Both the position numbers and the translations under genes were made by a program. A stretch of DNA of 62,172 bases, counting the filler, from Choristocarpus tenellus KU-1152 (Eukaryota; Protista; Phaeophyceae), in the NCBI GenBank assembly GCA_964200185.2. It is 15 parts of 15 records of this genome, joined end to end, with 100 filler letters (N's around TTAATTAATTAA, not from the genome) between each part and the next. Parts side by side here need not be neighbours in the genome. Positions count along the whole stretch, not along the records: positions 1 to 5,788 come from CAXNAD020009750.1; 14 more parts are not named here. One strand, 5' to 3'. The notes under the pieces are model-generated. The model did no database searches. It saw nothing but the letters and a program-made list of their open reading frames with translations, and had not been told where the DNA came from. Each line of letters opens with the position of its first letter. Position 1 is the first letter of the stretch. Of the stretch, positions 1 through 5,788 are shown piece after piece.

Positions 1-231
1 ATGACTTACCTATGTATGTATATACCCTTGCGATATGGTTTTCATGCTTCAACAATATCATCTCATCCGACCGTCTCCGTGCTGCTGCAGCATGTACTGC
101 GCGTAAATATCTACAGAATGTGTGATCCGCTGCTGGCATACGATACCTCTAGGATTCCATCCCCCGTCCCTCGTATCCACCTCCAACACATCTCCCATCC
201 ATTTATATTCATATTTGCGCTACTACAACAG

Positions 232-3200
232 GAACGGCACGAACAAAGATAAGGACATGGCTCCAAAGCGAGACTGGGTGATGTCCTGGATAAACTACTG
301 GGCTGATACATACGGGCAGTTCATGCCTCACAAGTCTACAATTGTGATCTACGCCGCAAACAAACAGGTCGGTTTTGCCCTTGGTTGTGGAGAGGTTGGC
401 TGCACCCTGTGTTGGAGTTAGATGCAAACAGTGAGACCCGGCAGTACGTAGAAAAGGTGGATCTCGAATTGTGGATGTTCATTGCTTTGACCCGTCTGAT
501 ATTATGGTTAAGAGAACGTGTCAAGGTTCGTACAAAATACGATCTTTTTCGTTTGCTATGTCGAGATTACAATATTCATGATGATACTCTTCATCGATCT
601 TACGAAGGAAGACACAGCAACTATTATTTTAACGCCGTGTACACCTACTCTGCGGCCCCGGGCCCGGTCTGACATTGGTAGGAAAAGTGTGTACTTCATA
701 TGTCTAAAGCGCTTCGCGATGATGATTATGATGATGGTAGATTCGCCTCCTTTGCCGCTTCTGCAAACGGCAGCGAGGTCCGAACAGAATGGCGCTCATG
801 GCAGATTTACGAAGATCATTGTATTTGCTCTTTTGTAACGCGCGATGAAAGCTTGCTTTATCCTGTCTTTCGCGTTCTCAGTCAAGTTATTGGTCAGCTC
901 GCCTTCGAGAGATCTTGCAGGGGTGTTCTTCGAGTGTTCCTTCTCAATAACTCCTCACTTGCCCACACAACCAACATATTTAATTAGGAGCTATACAAGG
1001 AGTTTTGCAAAGAGGCAATACGAGTGTATCCTGACGACCCTTCCTAGCGGGTAAGCAGGGCGCACTTCCTCCGATTGCTCAGAGAGGACAGGCCCAATAT
1101 CAGGGTGAGGGTAGGAGGCGAGTTTATGAAATGTCACCTATGTGTCACATTAAAAGAGAAGCGGCACAGTGCGCCTGGTGTAAAATCCACGAACGACTCC
1201 ACCGTCCTCGAGTCCATTGATAAGGAGCTATGAGACCAACGAGAGGTTGGTGTCCTCATTTAATTTTGCAACAAGGGTACAGTAACAACATTTCGCCGTC
1301 GTTGCCCTCCATTTCAAGAACATCTGTTTCCTTTTGCAAATGAAGACTCCCACGCAGGTGTTTATGGCAGCAGCAGTAGCCTCACTTGCCGTAAAACTTG
1401 TTGTTATGAGCTGCCCAAACACCTTGTATGATAGAGTGCTTCCTGGTCGAGTACAACGGGCTGTTGGAGGGACAGGTCATGTAGCGGCCTTCCTCCCCCG
1501 TACGTACATACTTCCTACCATCCCGATAACACTGAGTTTGTCTTGAATGCAGCAATATAGCATATCCCACTACAAACATTTATTGTTACCCACAAACCAT
1601 GTTTGTTACTAACTAACCTGATATGTGTTAACAAGTTGCATTTTTTATAAACCCTGAGCAATTTCTGTTTAAACCCTGAGCAGATATATTTGATTAATTC
1701 ACGTGATGTTGCTGTCCCCCATTCGCCAGATTATCCAAGTGGATCGACTGGTCATCGCCAACAGCACCAGCAGCGCCATGCGGGCCAAAGCCGACGGCAA
1801 ACCTCTCTCTCTGCTTCGTGTTCATGTCCGTAGACGCCGCGAACCAGACAGCACACGCCCTCCCAGCACTTTACCCACCTAGCCACGGCGGTGACAGGTA
1901 ACCACACGCACGCATAGTCCATCCAACAACAACTTTGCAGCCGCACGCGGAACAGAATAGGCGACCATGTTTGAGTGAAAGTATCTTAAAGGGTACGAAT
2001 TTTGCCCTGTTTGTCCATTTGGGGATTTGCTTCCCATGGGTTATTTCACGACATTTTCCTACTCCAAAATGTTTAGGAGTAGGTAAAATGAATACGTTAT
2101 GAAAAGGTATGTCCGAAACATAGATATTGAAACTTCCTAACAAACACGGTAGCCAAAATTACATCAACATCGCAACATTATATTTTGACCCCCTAATGGA
2201 CGCGGCTCTACCCTCTAAGATACTTTGACTCTTTTATTCTACGAATGAGTGCAAAGTCCCAAGAAATAATTGCCAAAACAGACGCACATAATTCCACTAC
2301 CTATTTCGGAAACATCATGATGACGACACACCTTTAAACCTTTCTTTACACGTTCCTTTCGTTCATGTCCCCCTTATCAGGGGCTACTCCGAGCGCCAGA
2401 AGATCATGGCCGCACATGTCGAAGGCCAGTTCGCGGAGGTGTTCGTCACTCCTGTCAATCTTGGAGGAGGTACGTATTGTGGGCCGTTGCGAACGATCAC
2501 ATGACTGAATAGATACTAGTTGCGCACGCACCACTTGATTTACCTTCGTGGCGAGTGGACCTGCCATAGGGTAAATCCGTAAGGACGAGTACATCCTTAC
2601 ACGATGTGCCTACAGATACCTCAGGCCTAGTGAACAGTCGATTAACTGATGATGCACTGTGCTCCCCTGCCCTCCTACGCCTCAGCTTAGGGTTAGAGCG
2701 AAAGGAGCGTAAGAGCTAATCAACGAGGAGGAAAACACATAGACATATACATCAGCCATTCCGATGTATGTACTCTACATTGCATAAACCAATTTCATTA
2801 CTCCTCTTATTAGCTCCAAATAAACAATGCGTAAGTAAGCAGAGTACTTTTTGCCAACAGTTGTTGGACATCATCGTTCGCCCAGGTTGTAACCTTGTCT
2901 GCACAGACACACACCTTGCCCCCACAAGGCTTATCGATAAGTACCACAAGAGCCTCGATCACGCGGGGAGTTGCATCATCCAGCACACGCATTGGCAGGT
3001 AAGAAGGTTTCATCTTGACACGACCTACTCAACACATACTCACTGAATATTGGTCACCAAGTAACTAACTGCACGGTCGTAAGTTTTTGTTTGTGTGTTG
3101 CAACCTGCATATATGATGGCGGTGATGTAGAGGTTGCGCTCTAGCACTACTGGAAACATTCCCTGCTCCTCCACGAAACGCGGCAAATTGGGCTGACATA

Positions 3201-4863
3201 TCGGCCTCACGCCTATCCCTCTCTCGCTCCCAACTCCCCAAACTGGCCAGGTCGACAACTGCGTCTCAGAGAACAAGAACAATTTCTTTCTCGGATATAC
3301 GGGGCTGTTGGTCGCGGCGAGTGCCATTCGTGTGGTCGAGATATATTCTATGATGGTGGGGAACACGCACATCAAAATCGATCAGATCTTCTCCAGGTAA
3401 TTAGGCAAGATATGCAAGTTCGATAGTCACATAGTGTTTTTATACGGACAGATACTGCCTTGAGGCTTGCAGCTCACGCTTGTTGCATCCATGGAAGGTT
3501 TATGGTCGTACGCTGTAGTTGATTGATTGGCTTTTGATTTCCCCATAACAAAATTGGACGTTAAGAGCAGCTGCCAAATTTGTTTCGTAACATACTCTCG
3601 AAACAAAACAATAAAAAAAATGAACGCATCACTCCTTTTTATATGCATACTTCCATATACATGCATCTGAGCATGTGCCTGCATATATATCTTGCTTCTA
3701 CACTTCGCTTCTTTCGCCCCCTCCTCAAAATTAACTTGCTTGCATTTCACCTTCAGGTTTTCACGTGGTATAAAAGGCAAGAACATATTCACAAGAACAC
3801 AGCTGGGTGAAGAGCTGCAGGCCTCTTACACGGAGGTTCCAGTATATACTACAAGACCCTACAGAACGAGGGCAACTTTAAGGGACTCCTTCGCGGTCGC
3901 GTCAACCGTGTCCCCAATATCACGACCTACAGGACTTTTCGCGTTGAAAAAGGTGGTGATGGGCGGGTGAAGGTTAGTGCAAAGCGATACATGCACAGCA
4001 CCGAATGGAGTGGGATAGGCGGAGACCTTGCTATGGACCCCAACGCCCCTCTGCACGACCTCTTCATTGGCCACCCACCTCGTATCCAAGATGCACCACC
4101 CTACCAGCTCAAGAGCGTTCCCAAAGACGTCATCCTGAAGGTGGAGCAGCGGTACCAGGCGTCGCACAAGCGCCTCGCTGCTGTGCACCCACTGGGTAAG
4201 TCAATTTTTTCGTGAGGGGTGTAGATAGTAAATTTTTGGTATTGGGTGGCAACCCAATAAAATCTGGTGCAACTTCTGTACGAGGCAGCCCTTACAGCCT
4301 ATAGAAAAAAATCTTGAAAAACATTGCATTCTCATGTGTAGTGATCGTTGCATGTTACGATAATAAGTACCATAGATTACTCCCCATAAATGTGTTGAGG
4401 GTACCGGTCTTGTTCTCAACAGACACGATTCCGACGAAATATACATCCTCCCTCTCACCGCATGCTCCCCGAGCGCATTCGTGAAACCCCGTGCCTGGTT
4501 ACAAAGTAACATTCATGCTTCCATACCGTTGATGTTCTCGTGCTCATGGATTCCACCTTCGCAGACGATGAAGCCGTTCAGAGAGCGAAATACGAGCAAA
4601 GCGAGTCTGTGCGGCTTCTCAAAAAGACAGGGGAACGAGATTTCGACCTCCCAGTCCATTGGTTTCCCACCGATGACGATGGCGCTGTAACTAGTACCAG
4701 CGACGTCGAAGACACCGACCAGGGCGAACATTCGGGTGGAGGAGATAATCTCATCACCGGTGACAATGATCTCGAAGGGCTCGGGAAACACACTCTTCCT
4801 CATCGGACAATGACAAGGAAGAACCTGGCTCCTGTCGACGGGGTTGACCTCATGCTATATTGA
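232..4863 (+). pseudogene. Intron-containing Sola-like DDD transposase, 5'-incomplete and disabled
   Basis: Exons 232-367, 988-1245, 1730-1897, 2381-2469, 2886-2998, 3251-3396, 3757-4195 and 4565-4863 all have GT-AG boundaries with matching phases. The spliced protein reads SWINYWADTYGQFMP...HFLRLLREDRPNIRVRVGGEFMKCHLC...FMSVDAANQTAHALP...GGGCNLVC...WQVDNCVSENKNNFFLGY...MVGNTHIKIDQIFSRFS...NFKGLL...YRTFRVEK...W. This follows the F-x-K-C-x2-C / IDGMDQ / QLDNCxxENKN / GHTHEDIDQxFS motif order of Sola-type transposases. Lesions: TAG 1045-1047, TGA 1231-1233, frameshifts at ~1803-1812 and ~3842-3858. Confidence 0.85.
1973..2231 (-). mobile_element. MITE family A, in intron 3 of the transposase
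   Basis: TIRs GAGTGAAAGTATCTTAAAGGGTA ... TACCCTCTAAGATACTTTGACTC; TTT on both flanks; internal hairpin CATTTTCCTACTCC...GGAGTAGGTAAAATG. Confidence 0.9.
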
Positions 4864-4887
4864 CATCAGGAAACCATGGAAACCTAC

Positions 4888-5014
4888 TGAATATGATATA
4901 AAAATCAATCAACATTATGAGTCAGTACATATAATATATCTGTTACTGGCTCTCCATCCTATTATCTAATCCACCGGTGGTGTCTACGTGTATCAGCAGC
5001 ACTATCTACGAACA
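4888..5014 (+). repeat. 3' fragment of a Copia-like LTR
   Basis: Near-identical to 22527-22653; ends CTACGAACA. Confidence 0.6.
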
Positions 5015-5201
5015 CTCTCCCTTGCTGCGCAGACACTCTACACCCTTAGCATCTACTTCTGTATAAACTTGAAGAAAGAAACAAACTTTTGCTGACTCTC
5101 TCAAAAACAAATGCAATTAATATACCCTAGAATCAAAGTTGACATTGGGTCTGTGTAGGTACAAAAACTCAGTTATCAATTCTAGACCTTTGTCCTACTG
5201 C

Positions 5202-5321
5202 AGCCTCCAGTGGAAATATTATGGGGTACTTTCTCCTGCAATCCTTAGCGATGTCCCATTGCGTCTCCAGTGGAAACATTATGATGTACTTTCTCCTGCA
5301 AGTCCTTAGCGATGTCACATC
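5202..5321. repeat. Two-copy ~60-bp tandem repeat
   Basis: CTCCAGTGGAAAYATTATGRxGTACTTTCTCCTGCAA(G)TCCTTAGCGATGTC occurs twice. Confidence 0.75.
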
Positions 5322-5748
5322 TCATCTCCCACAATCCATGAAATGGCGAGGTCCTTAGCAATACATCCAGCGTCTCGTACAATCAACGAGACCTCCCTGG
5401 TACATCACTAAATCTTCGGAACAAAGTAATATGGTGGAACTGCCATTTCCTACCTATCCTATCACAATCTCTACGAACACATCCTGGGGTGTTTTCTACT
5501 GTGGGTCTTTAGCCAAACCAAAATGCATCTCCCACGATCCTGGAAATATCCCTAGTGTCACGTACGTCTAAAGTGAATACTTGGAAAAAGTAATACTAAA
5601 CGATTGACATACCACTGAAATACCATACACAAAAAAAAGAGGAAAACCTCTCCTTGACTAAAGTCAGTCTGTATACAACATCACAGCTGTCACTTGACTA
5701 CTTTGGGTATGCACCAAAATACACAAGAAAAATAGGGGACAAACTCAA

Positions 5749-5788
5749 GAGTCAAATTATCTAAGAGGGTAGAGCCGCGTCCATTTGG
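5749..5788 (+). mobile_element. MITE family A left end, cut by the contig break
   Basis: GAGTCAAATTATCTAAGAGGGTAGAGCCGCGTCCATTTGG. Confidence 0.85.

Follow-up and report, generated by a model that had tools for sequence, protein, structure and literature searches.

A decayed and truncated, intron-containing transposase gene, probably of the Sola1 superfamily, in the brown alga Choristocarpus tenellus

We report here that the gene at positions 232 to 4885 of the window, by which we mean the whole 62,172-nucleotide stretch of Choristocarpus tenellus DNA that was analyzed, is very probably a decayed, truncated copy of the transposase gene of a cut-and-paste DNA transposon of the Sola1 superfamily. 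The copy would belong to a family of several hundred members, the gene of which carries at least eight introns. We regard it as an ordinary repeat and not as a gene of a new kind. A preliminary description of this DNA had presented it as a hidden and divergent Sola-like lineage; this overstated its novelty, given that giant Sola-1 elements of a brown alga were already published in 2025 (PMC12477816). The element described there, Sola1-1_Ec32, is a 21.5-kb giant Sola-1 DNA transposon of Ectocarpus with 1,989 copies, 2 of them intact, and it forms part of a transposable element set in which intron-containing genes were curated by RNA-seq (PMC12477816).

The eight exons are colinear on the + strand, and all seven introns between them start with GT and end with AG. 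Exon 1 (232-367) is an internal exon with its acceptor AG at 230-231; it contains an ATG at 257, the frame stays open 5' of that ATG, and 8 of 13 sister copies retain both the AG/GT sites and the open frame. By eye, exon 1 matches a ..PKRD...MP.. stretch located about 190 residues into the Sola1-1_Ec32 transposase. Exon 2 (988-1245) encodes a CxxC motif at 1132-1143 and contains two copy-specific stop codons, exon 3 (1730-1897) carries the codon of the first catalytic Asp (1833-1835), and exon 4 (2381-2469) is bounded by AG/GT sites present in 11/11 copies. Exon 5 extends from 2886 to 2998. Its acceptor AG at 2884-2885, a CAG with a CTAAC upstream that is conserved in sister copies, was kept in all 11 of these and fits the phase of exon 4. 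The AG at 2859-2860 was rejected as an alternative acceptor, since its use would put the exon out of phase and only 4 of the 11 copies retain it. Exon 6 (3251-3396) includes the second Asp (3254-3256), a GNTH sequence and the third Asp (3380-3382), and exon 7 (3757-4195) contains a 2-nt insertion in a TA run. Exon 8 (4565-4885), which had earlier been ended at 4863, represents the first part of a long terminal exon, which in sister copies continues for about 250 codons beyond 4885.

Positions 1 to 231 (+ strand) are the end of the intron preceding exon 1. They lie inside the repeat, which runs off the start of the contig; about 40 copies align with the window from its first base on, and a sister copy has an upstream coding exon at C7196:4773-4910, 180-320 bp before the point corresponding to window base 1. 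The eight-exon model covers only part of a longer gene, with at least one upstream exon beyond the contig start. The eight exons, seven GT-AG introns and matching phases noted in the preliminary description are present, but the gene is incomplete and all phases agree only when exon 5 starts at 2886.

All searches were made exon by exon rather than with the joined, spliced protein. In Pfam, exon 6 matches PF25273 (DUF7869) with an E value of 8.7e-15 and 55.2 bits (gathering cut-off 26) over profile positions 65-113 of 192; sister copies score up to 80 bits, and a scan of each exon piece gave no match besides that of exon 6. An exhaustive search with exon 6 returned 139 database relatives, the closest of which are brown-alga gene models from Choristocarpus, Sphacelaria, Ectocarpus and Undaria, and ten long homologs carry DUF7869 at E values of 1e-44 to 1e-49. 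When aligned by hhalign to A1, a profile of DUF7869 proteins of 500-1000 amino acids, exon 2 corresponds to columns 16-56 (E 2.1e-5), exon 3 to columns 97-120 with a ..DGADQ..LPHF block (E 8.8e-6), exon 4 to columns 124-150 (E 0.0056; colinear, weak) and exon 7 to columns 262-347 (E 5.6e-13, probability 98%), and exon 5 falls into place in the order, with a match that is not significant. By tblastn, the Choristocarpus gene model P0003 also matches exon 4, P0003 and P0012 match exon 5, and proteins of Ectocarpus, Sphacelaria and Undaria match exon 7. The same exon structure was scored at no fewer than 150 genomic sites. With this recurrence and the colinear exon-by-exon homology, the exon pattern lies far beyond chance.

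Across the aligned homologs, the DNC..N.N and G.TH..D.Q.FS blocks do not vary and a D.A.Q block is conserved. Among 30 homologs, the second and third Asp show little or no variation, whereas the first falls within the D.A.Q block. As had been described from the window alone, the CxxC motif and all three aspartates are in place, and the Asp codons at 1833-1835, 3254-3256 and 3380-3382 are kept in 20/20, 12/12 and 20/20 sampled sister copies, respectively. DUF7869 proteins of 500-1000 amino acids resemble the window gene in their DNC..ENKN, GHTH.D.DQ.FS, D.A.Q and CxxC sequences and in an RNase H-like modelled core. They differ from it in that they are encoded by long uninterrupted open reading frames, whereas many introns interrupt the brown-alga genes, and in that they keep the first His of GHTH, which is Asn in the window copy. 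The name DUF7869 was absent from the literature searched.

The fold was modelled on a full-length homolog and not on the window's own protein. The AlphaFold model of the homolog core (pLDDT 87, pTM 0.81) has the order strand-strand-strand-helix-strand-helix-strand-helix, and its best Foldseek matches are Mos1, Metnase/SETMAR, retroviral integrases, IstA, Sleeping Beauty and RNase HI, with all matches being RNase H-like transposases, integrases or nucleases. A sequence-profile search of solved structures gave no match. Transposases of the Tc1/mariner type (Mos1, Metnase/SETMAR and Sleeping Beauty) are the best structural matches, at Foldseek probabilities of 0.96-0.99, and carry their catalytic residues in the same order on an RNase H-like core as the homolog model. 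However, sequence identity to the homolog is only 10-17%, and the flanking domains differ; the likeness is one of fold and mechanism and not of family membership. For the C-terminal extension, Pfam returned low-complexity acidic matches only, look-alikes in the ESM Atlas were uninformative, and the AlphaFold model (pLDDT 46) was unusable.

The intact protein is predicted to be an RNase H-fold DDD transposase with the first Asp on strand 1 (D.A.Q), the second closing strand 4 (DNC..ENKN) and the third opening the next helix (GHTH..D.Q.FS). The upstream CxxC region and the N-terminal region would probably bind DNA. The family also encodes an additional C-terminal domain and an acidic tail. At least eight spliceosomal introns are part of the element, which would move by a cut-and-paste mechanism, and dead copies may be mobilized in trans.

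The Sola-like DDD transposase of the preliminary description finds support in the match to DUF7869, and by eye the gene can be placed in Sola1 specifically. Because the Sola1-1_Ec32 transposase aligns to exons 1-7, we consider the gene to be probably Sola1 rather than simply Sola-like; this link consists of a by-eye alignment to protein text printed in a supplement, convincing throughout exons 1-7 and with 26 of 49 residues identical in exon 6, and of one similar database protein. The latter, CAB1119301.1 (P0028), is near-identical to the Sola1-1_Ec32 transposase and matches exon 6 at E 6e-13 and exon 7 at E 6e-14 (tblastn). The two transposases share, in colinear order, ..PKRD.., CxxC, D.ANQ, DN..ENKNN, GHTH..DQIFS and ..IPNIT.. 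/ ..PPY.LK.. sequences, and by eye a Sola2-1_Ec32 fragment in the same supplement has none of the motifs of the window gene. Both elements reside in a brown alga, are large (21.5 kb compared to about 16 kb here) and have many decayed copies. With about 50% identity in exon 6, they represent different families. Compared with the Ec32 protein model, the window family is longer at the C-terminal end by about 250 codons, and Ec32 has an accessory gene of the ParB/methyltransferase type, whereas none was detected in ten upstream open reading frames here.

It is improbable that the gene belongs to another DDD/DDE superfamily, with DUF7869 unrelated to Sola1 and Sola1-1_Ec32 misclassified in the literature. 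Pfam leaves the domain unnamed, the fold matches are generic with mariner-type proteins best, and the comparison made here reaches Sola1 of Repbase by way of Sola1-1_Ec32, all of which would be compatible with such a reading. Against it, Sola1-1_Ec32 was classed by its best blastp match to Repbase Sola1-1_PPa and has a 4-bp target site duplication (PMC12477816), and the motif pattern that the window gene has in common with it extends over about 450 residues.

Comparison with sister copies identified the lesions of the window gene as copy-specific. The stop codon at 1045-1047 is TAG, in place of AAG in 16/16 sister copies, and that at 1231-1233 is TGA, in place of TCA in 16/17. A His-to-Asn replacement at 3362-3364 (AAC; CAC in 19/20 sister copies) gives GNTH for GHTH. 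A 4-nt insertion in a CT run at about 1809-1812 is absent in 13/18 sister copies and in contigs of a sequencing run, and the 2-nt insertion in the TA run at about 3843-3848 is absent in 19/22 copies. These two stops, two frameshifts and the His-to-Asn change had all been seen earlier, when the copy was described as dead, but a third frameshift had been missed: one base is lacking after 4783, and 20/21 sister copies have an extra base at 4782/4783 and stay in frame beyond it. Because of this -1 frameshift at about 4783, the stop codon at 4861-4863 lies outside the family frame. All sister alignments stop at 4885/4886 and then go on with sequence that the window lacks.

Other repeats add to this damage. 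A MITE of 259 bp with 23-nt terminal inverted repeats (TIRs) and TTT on both sides occupies 1973-2231 in intron 3; it is missing from most sister copies and is not part of the gene, and in the run contigs it is represented by empty-site joints and very high depth. Downstream, within 4886-5788, an unrelated multicopy repeat (4888-5748) and the start of a second copy of the MITE (5747-5788) replace the rest of the transposon. With two nonsense codons, three frameshifts, the His-to-Asn replacement, the MITE, the missing 5' part and the break at 4885, this copy cannot make transposase. Single exons are intact in 30-70% of the 11-22 copies sampled, and no intact full-length copy was found among these. 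Recent decay had been proposed; this is unsupported because the divergence between this copy and each of the sampled sisters is 9-15% and its exons are hardly more conserved than its introns.

Hundreds of copies, 85-92% identical and split by the same introns, are present in the genome. Searching the genome for exon 6 gave 385 candidate DUF7869 matches, at least 150 of which were scored, and nearly all have the same 67-codon open frame ending at the intron. A first look with exons 3-6 gave 1010 candidates, and more than 40 DNA copies were scored among thousands of candidates. The Choristocarpus gene model has a best identity of 96% among 150 scored places, and the flanks at the 3' end differ between copies. 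It is very unlikely that the gene is a domesticated or ordinary host gene derived from a transposase, even though its introns are of host-like size and density, its splice sites are canonical and it may be transcribed. A host gene would have a low copy number and an intact frame, and neither is found here: hundreds of copies are 85-92% identical including introns and flanks, the reading frame of this copy carries five lesions, and conservation is hardly higher in exons than in introns. The hundreds of copies with the same introns lead us to conclude that this is not a hidden host gene.

The introns recur in all sampled copies and belong to the element itself. In homologs from other organisms the open reading frame is long and uninterrupted. 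Open reading frame fragments of many diverged relatives (57-86% identity) in Choristocarpus, Ectocarpus, Sphacelaria and Undaria end at the exon 6 donor residue. In contigs of run X3, depth is high over exons and low over introns. Joints in these contigs, from a run of unrecorded kind and at 85% likeness with a shorter side of 23-30 letters, correspond to predicted intron 3, to intron 7 with boundaries one base off, and to the exon-1 donor joined to the exon-4 acceptor.

Tiling indicates a repeat unit of about 16 kb with the gene at its 3' end. This 3' end could be placed in only two sister copies, and no inverted copy of it was found in the loci examined or in a genome search; Sola1-1_Ec32 has AACCG..CGGTT ends, a 282-bp TIR and a 4-bp target site duplication (PMC12477816). 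Ten long open reading frames in the upstream 10 kb gave no Pfam match, and thus nothing here points to a counterpart of the ParB/methyltransferase gene of the Ectocarpus element. It is possible, though we consider it unlikely, that the unit is a composite in which a Sola1 part of about 8.3 kb is joined to an upstream module of different origin (about 7.6 kb), or contains fixed nested insertions, and that it spread as a whole or by duplication. The position C7196:2841, 2.25 kb upstream of window base 1, is 78-80% like the sharp 5' start of a more abundant repeat, which in contig C5316 abuts the 3' end head-to-tail; the ten upstream frames are devoid of Pfam domains, and fixed nested insertions have been reported for giant Ectocarpus elements (PMC12477816). 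However, the approximately 15 or more sampled copies that reach C7196:2841 all span it unbroken, and identity is alike on both sides (84-93%), which fits one amplification unit, as a giant transposon also would.

In conclusion, DUF7869, until now a nameless Pfam domain, can plausibly be identified as the domain that forms the catalytic core in Sola1 transposases. At several hundred copies of about 8-16 kb each, the family would account for roughly 1-3% of the 164-Mb genome by a rough estimate. It is a source of many spurious, fragmentary gene models ("unnamed protein products") and matters mainly for annotation. Choristocarpus is an early-branching brown alga, and our findings probably extend giant Sola1 elements from Ectocarpus to such a lineage. 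It is possible, though less likely than not, that the Sola1 genes of brown algae form one old, vertically inherited lineage that kept a single gain of introns and acquired its C-terminal domain, perhaps for target choice, and that the family is still transcribed and spliced, with at least one copy supplying transposase in trans to hundreds of dead copies. If intron positions are shared across brown algae, the family would be a useful case of transposon genes gaining and keeping host-type introns.

Three-frame translation combined with splice-site inspection places eight colinear coding blocks on the plus strand of the window, at 232–367 (exon 1), 988–1245 (exon 2), 1730–1897 (exon 3), 2381–2469 (exon 4), 2886–2998 (exon 5), 3251–3396 (exon 6), 3757–4195 (exon 7) and 4565–4863 (exon 8 of the window model). 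Each intron of this copy begins with GT and ends with AG, and phases are consistent across all exons if the acceptor of exon 5 is the AG at 2884–2885. The CAG at 2883–2885, with CTAAC upstream, is conserved in 11 of 11 sister copies, that is, other genomic copies of the same family; a more obvious AG at 2859–2860, considered as the exon 5 acceptor, gives the wrong phase and is present in only four of the 11. A CxxC motif (1132–1143), three Asp codons (1833–1835, 3254–3256 and 3380–3382) and an Asn codon replacing His (3362–3364), all on the plus strand, lie where the preliminary description placed them. Its exons, splice sites and motif positions hold; its number of frameshifts, gene start and gene end were incomplete.

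The sequence was found in four public sequencing runs of unrecorded kind. In one of these, X3, contig depth over the predicted exons is roughly 10 to 150 times that of most introns; the two remaining runs of this organism are DNA-like in appearance. One X3 joint, 1897 to 2381, is exactly intron 3, and another, 4193 to 4564, lies one base from the predicted boundaries of intron 7 (4195/4565). A joint from 367 to 2381, in one contig, connects the donor of exon 1 to the acceptor of exon 4, skipping exons 2 and 3, and may come from a copy whose transcript is spliced alternatively or aberrantly. These joints come from contigs placed at 85% likeness with a shorter side of only 23–30 letters, and are supportive of the predicted splicing rather than conclusive. 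The boundaries of the window model also recur in a gene model from Choristocarpus, which unites exons 3, 4 and 6 with part of exon 5.

Homology searches were run exon by exon. Exon 6 alone matches Pfam DUF7869 (PF25273) with an E value of 8.7e-15, and an exhaustive search returned 139 relatives of this exon. The nearest are annotated gene models of brown algae, from Choristocarpus tenellus (88–90% identity), Sphacelaria rigidula, two Ectocarpus species and Undaria pinnatifida; the more distant are uninterrupted proteins of 500–1000 residues. DUF7869 was present in all 10 long homologs scanned (E 1e-44 to 1e-49), which contained no other Pfam domain. Along an alignment profile of 30 long DUF7869 proteins, exons 2–5 and 7 fall in order: exon 2 at columns 16–56 (E 2e-5), exon 3 at 97–120 (E 9e-6), exon 4, weakly, at 124–150 (E 0.0056), exon 5, without significance, at 155–162 (E 0.14) and exon 7 at 262–347 (E 6e-13). 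By tblastn, brown-alga proteins match exons 3–7. The stretch is real homologous coding sequence.

Among the long homologs, the DNC..ENKN and GHTH.D.DQ.FS blocks are invariant or nearly so, and the first Asp lies within a ..D.A.Q..LPHF block upstream of DNC..ENKN. An AlphaFold model of the core of one homolog (pLDDT 87, pTM 0.81) arranges its strands and helices in the canonical RNase H-like order. Strand 1 carries the first Asp, whereas the second is found where strand 4 ends and the third where the helix after strand 5 begins. Its Foldseek matches are RNase H-like enzymes only: the Mos1, Metnase/SETMAR and Sleeping Beauty transposases, retroviral integrases, IstA, terminase nucleases and RNase HI.

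Supplementary file 2 of a curated Ectocarpus transposable element library prints the transposase of Sola1-1_Ec32, a 21.5-kb Sola-1 element with a 4-bp target site duplication, classed through its best blastp match to Repbase Sola1-1_PPa (PMC12477816). By eye, this transposase aligns block for block with window exons 1 to 7, with 26 of 49 residues identical in exon 6. CAB1119301.1 of Ectocarpus sp. CCAP 1310/34, near-identical to it over the shared part, matches exon 6 (E 6e-13) and exon 7 (E 6e-14) by tblastn. The earlier term "Sola-like" was therefore apt and can be narrowed: judged by the published classification and the by-eye alignment, Sola1 transposase would be the right name for this gene. 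Sola-1 transposons of giant size, most of their copies pseudogenized, are already on record for brown algae (PMC12477816), and the preliminary description overstated the novelty.

The sequence belongs to a repeat rather than to a host gene. More than 40 DNA copies of 232–4863 were scored among thousands of candidates, at 85–91% identity, introns included. DUF7869 matches were scored at at least 150 places among 385 candidates, nearly all sharing a 67-codon open frame that terminates at the intron 6 donor, and the four-exon Choristocarpus gene model gave 1010 first-look candidates. Among copies, conservation is only slightly higher in exons (90–93%) than in introns (81–91%), which is how decaying copies appear and does not bear out the recent decay proposed earlier. 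Taken one at a time, exons retain their splice sites and a frame free of stops in 30–70% of the 11–22 copies sampled, among which no fully intact copy was found.

The window copy is dead, as had been proposed. Compared with sister copies, its plus strand carries stops at 1045–1047 (TAG for AAG) and 1231–1233 (TGA for TCA), a 4-base insertion in a CT run near 1809–1812, AAC for CAC at 3362–3364, a 2-base insertion in a TA run near 3843–3848 and, overlooked earlier, a third frameshift from one base missing after 4783. Because of this missing base, the triplet at 4861–4863 is not the gene's own stop; in sister copies the frame continues about 250 codons beyond the equivalent of 4885, through a conserved domain of about 125 residues and then an acidic tail. 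This domain lies in the last exon (minus strand 1557–1946 of locus L070 in contig C5316; also sister loci L061, L065 and L066) and is weakly shared with CAN0392031.1 of Ectocarpus sp. 12; Pfam gave no match to the domain, and the structure model made of it was too poor for use. At the other end, the 5' boundary of exon 1 is an acceptor, and sister locus L033 (contig C7196) has a further coding exon at 4773–4910, 180–320 bp upstream of the position that corresponds to window base 1. Its sequence is similar to the N-terminal part of long homologs (best E 4.5e-4 with P0125, 0.003 with P0044) and, by eye, to the Sola1-1_Ec32 protein. With this upstream exon and the open frame past 4885 in sister copies, the window holds the middle portion of a longer gene.

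Within the window, the element ends at 4885/4886; beyond it lie a repeat of no relation to it and a MITE. The multicopy repeat (4888–5748), with two modules (4888–5268 and 5265–5748) and direct repeats some 60 bp long inside it, stands in place of the remaining last exon. A 259-bp MITE copy with 23-nt terminal inverted repeats and TTT on each side occupies 1973–2231 in intron 3; a second, in reverse orientation, runs from 5747 to 5788 and past the contig end, and sister locus L068 has one at 2578. The MITE is extremely abundant, since its depth in the DNA-like runs is 20–100 times that of the adjoining repeat.

From window base 1, a walk along overlapping contigs (C9750, C7196, C3985 and C6057) followed the shared sequence upstream for about 9.9 kb, as far as a poly-C tract; downstream, sister copies continue for 1.13 kb past 4885 to a sharp end common to two copies with unrelated flanks. 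These extents suggest a repeat unit of some 16 kb that carries the transposase gene at the 3' end and is comparable in size to the giant element of Ectocarpus. Neither the sampled loci nor a genome search yielded an inverted copy of the 3' end, so any terminal inverted repeats and target site duplication of this element are putative. The unit may be composite, as L033:2841, which lies 2.25 kb upstream of the window, is homologous, at 78–80%, to the sharply defined 5' start of a different and more abundant repeat, although this point is spanned in all sampled copies. At 1977/1978 on the reverse strand of L070, the element's 3' end adjoins the 5' start of that repeat head to tail. This arrangement may reflect a tandem insertion, a related subfamily or a unit of composite make-up. 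Tandem repeats of about 175 bp, varying in number between copies, occur about 0.7–1.3 kb upstream of the window start (L033:3800–4370) and at the equivalents in C5497, C5581 and C5085.

The idea of an intron-rich lineage gains support from relatives. Long homologs of other organisms are uninterrupted. Many short database ORFs of diverged relatives terminate at the last residue of exon 6, which suggests that the intron after this exon is old and common to brown-alga lineages.
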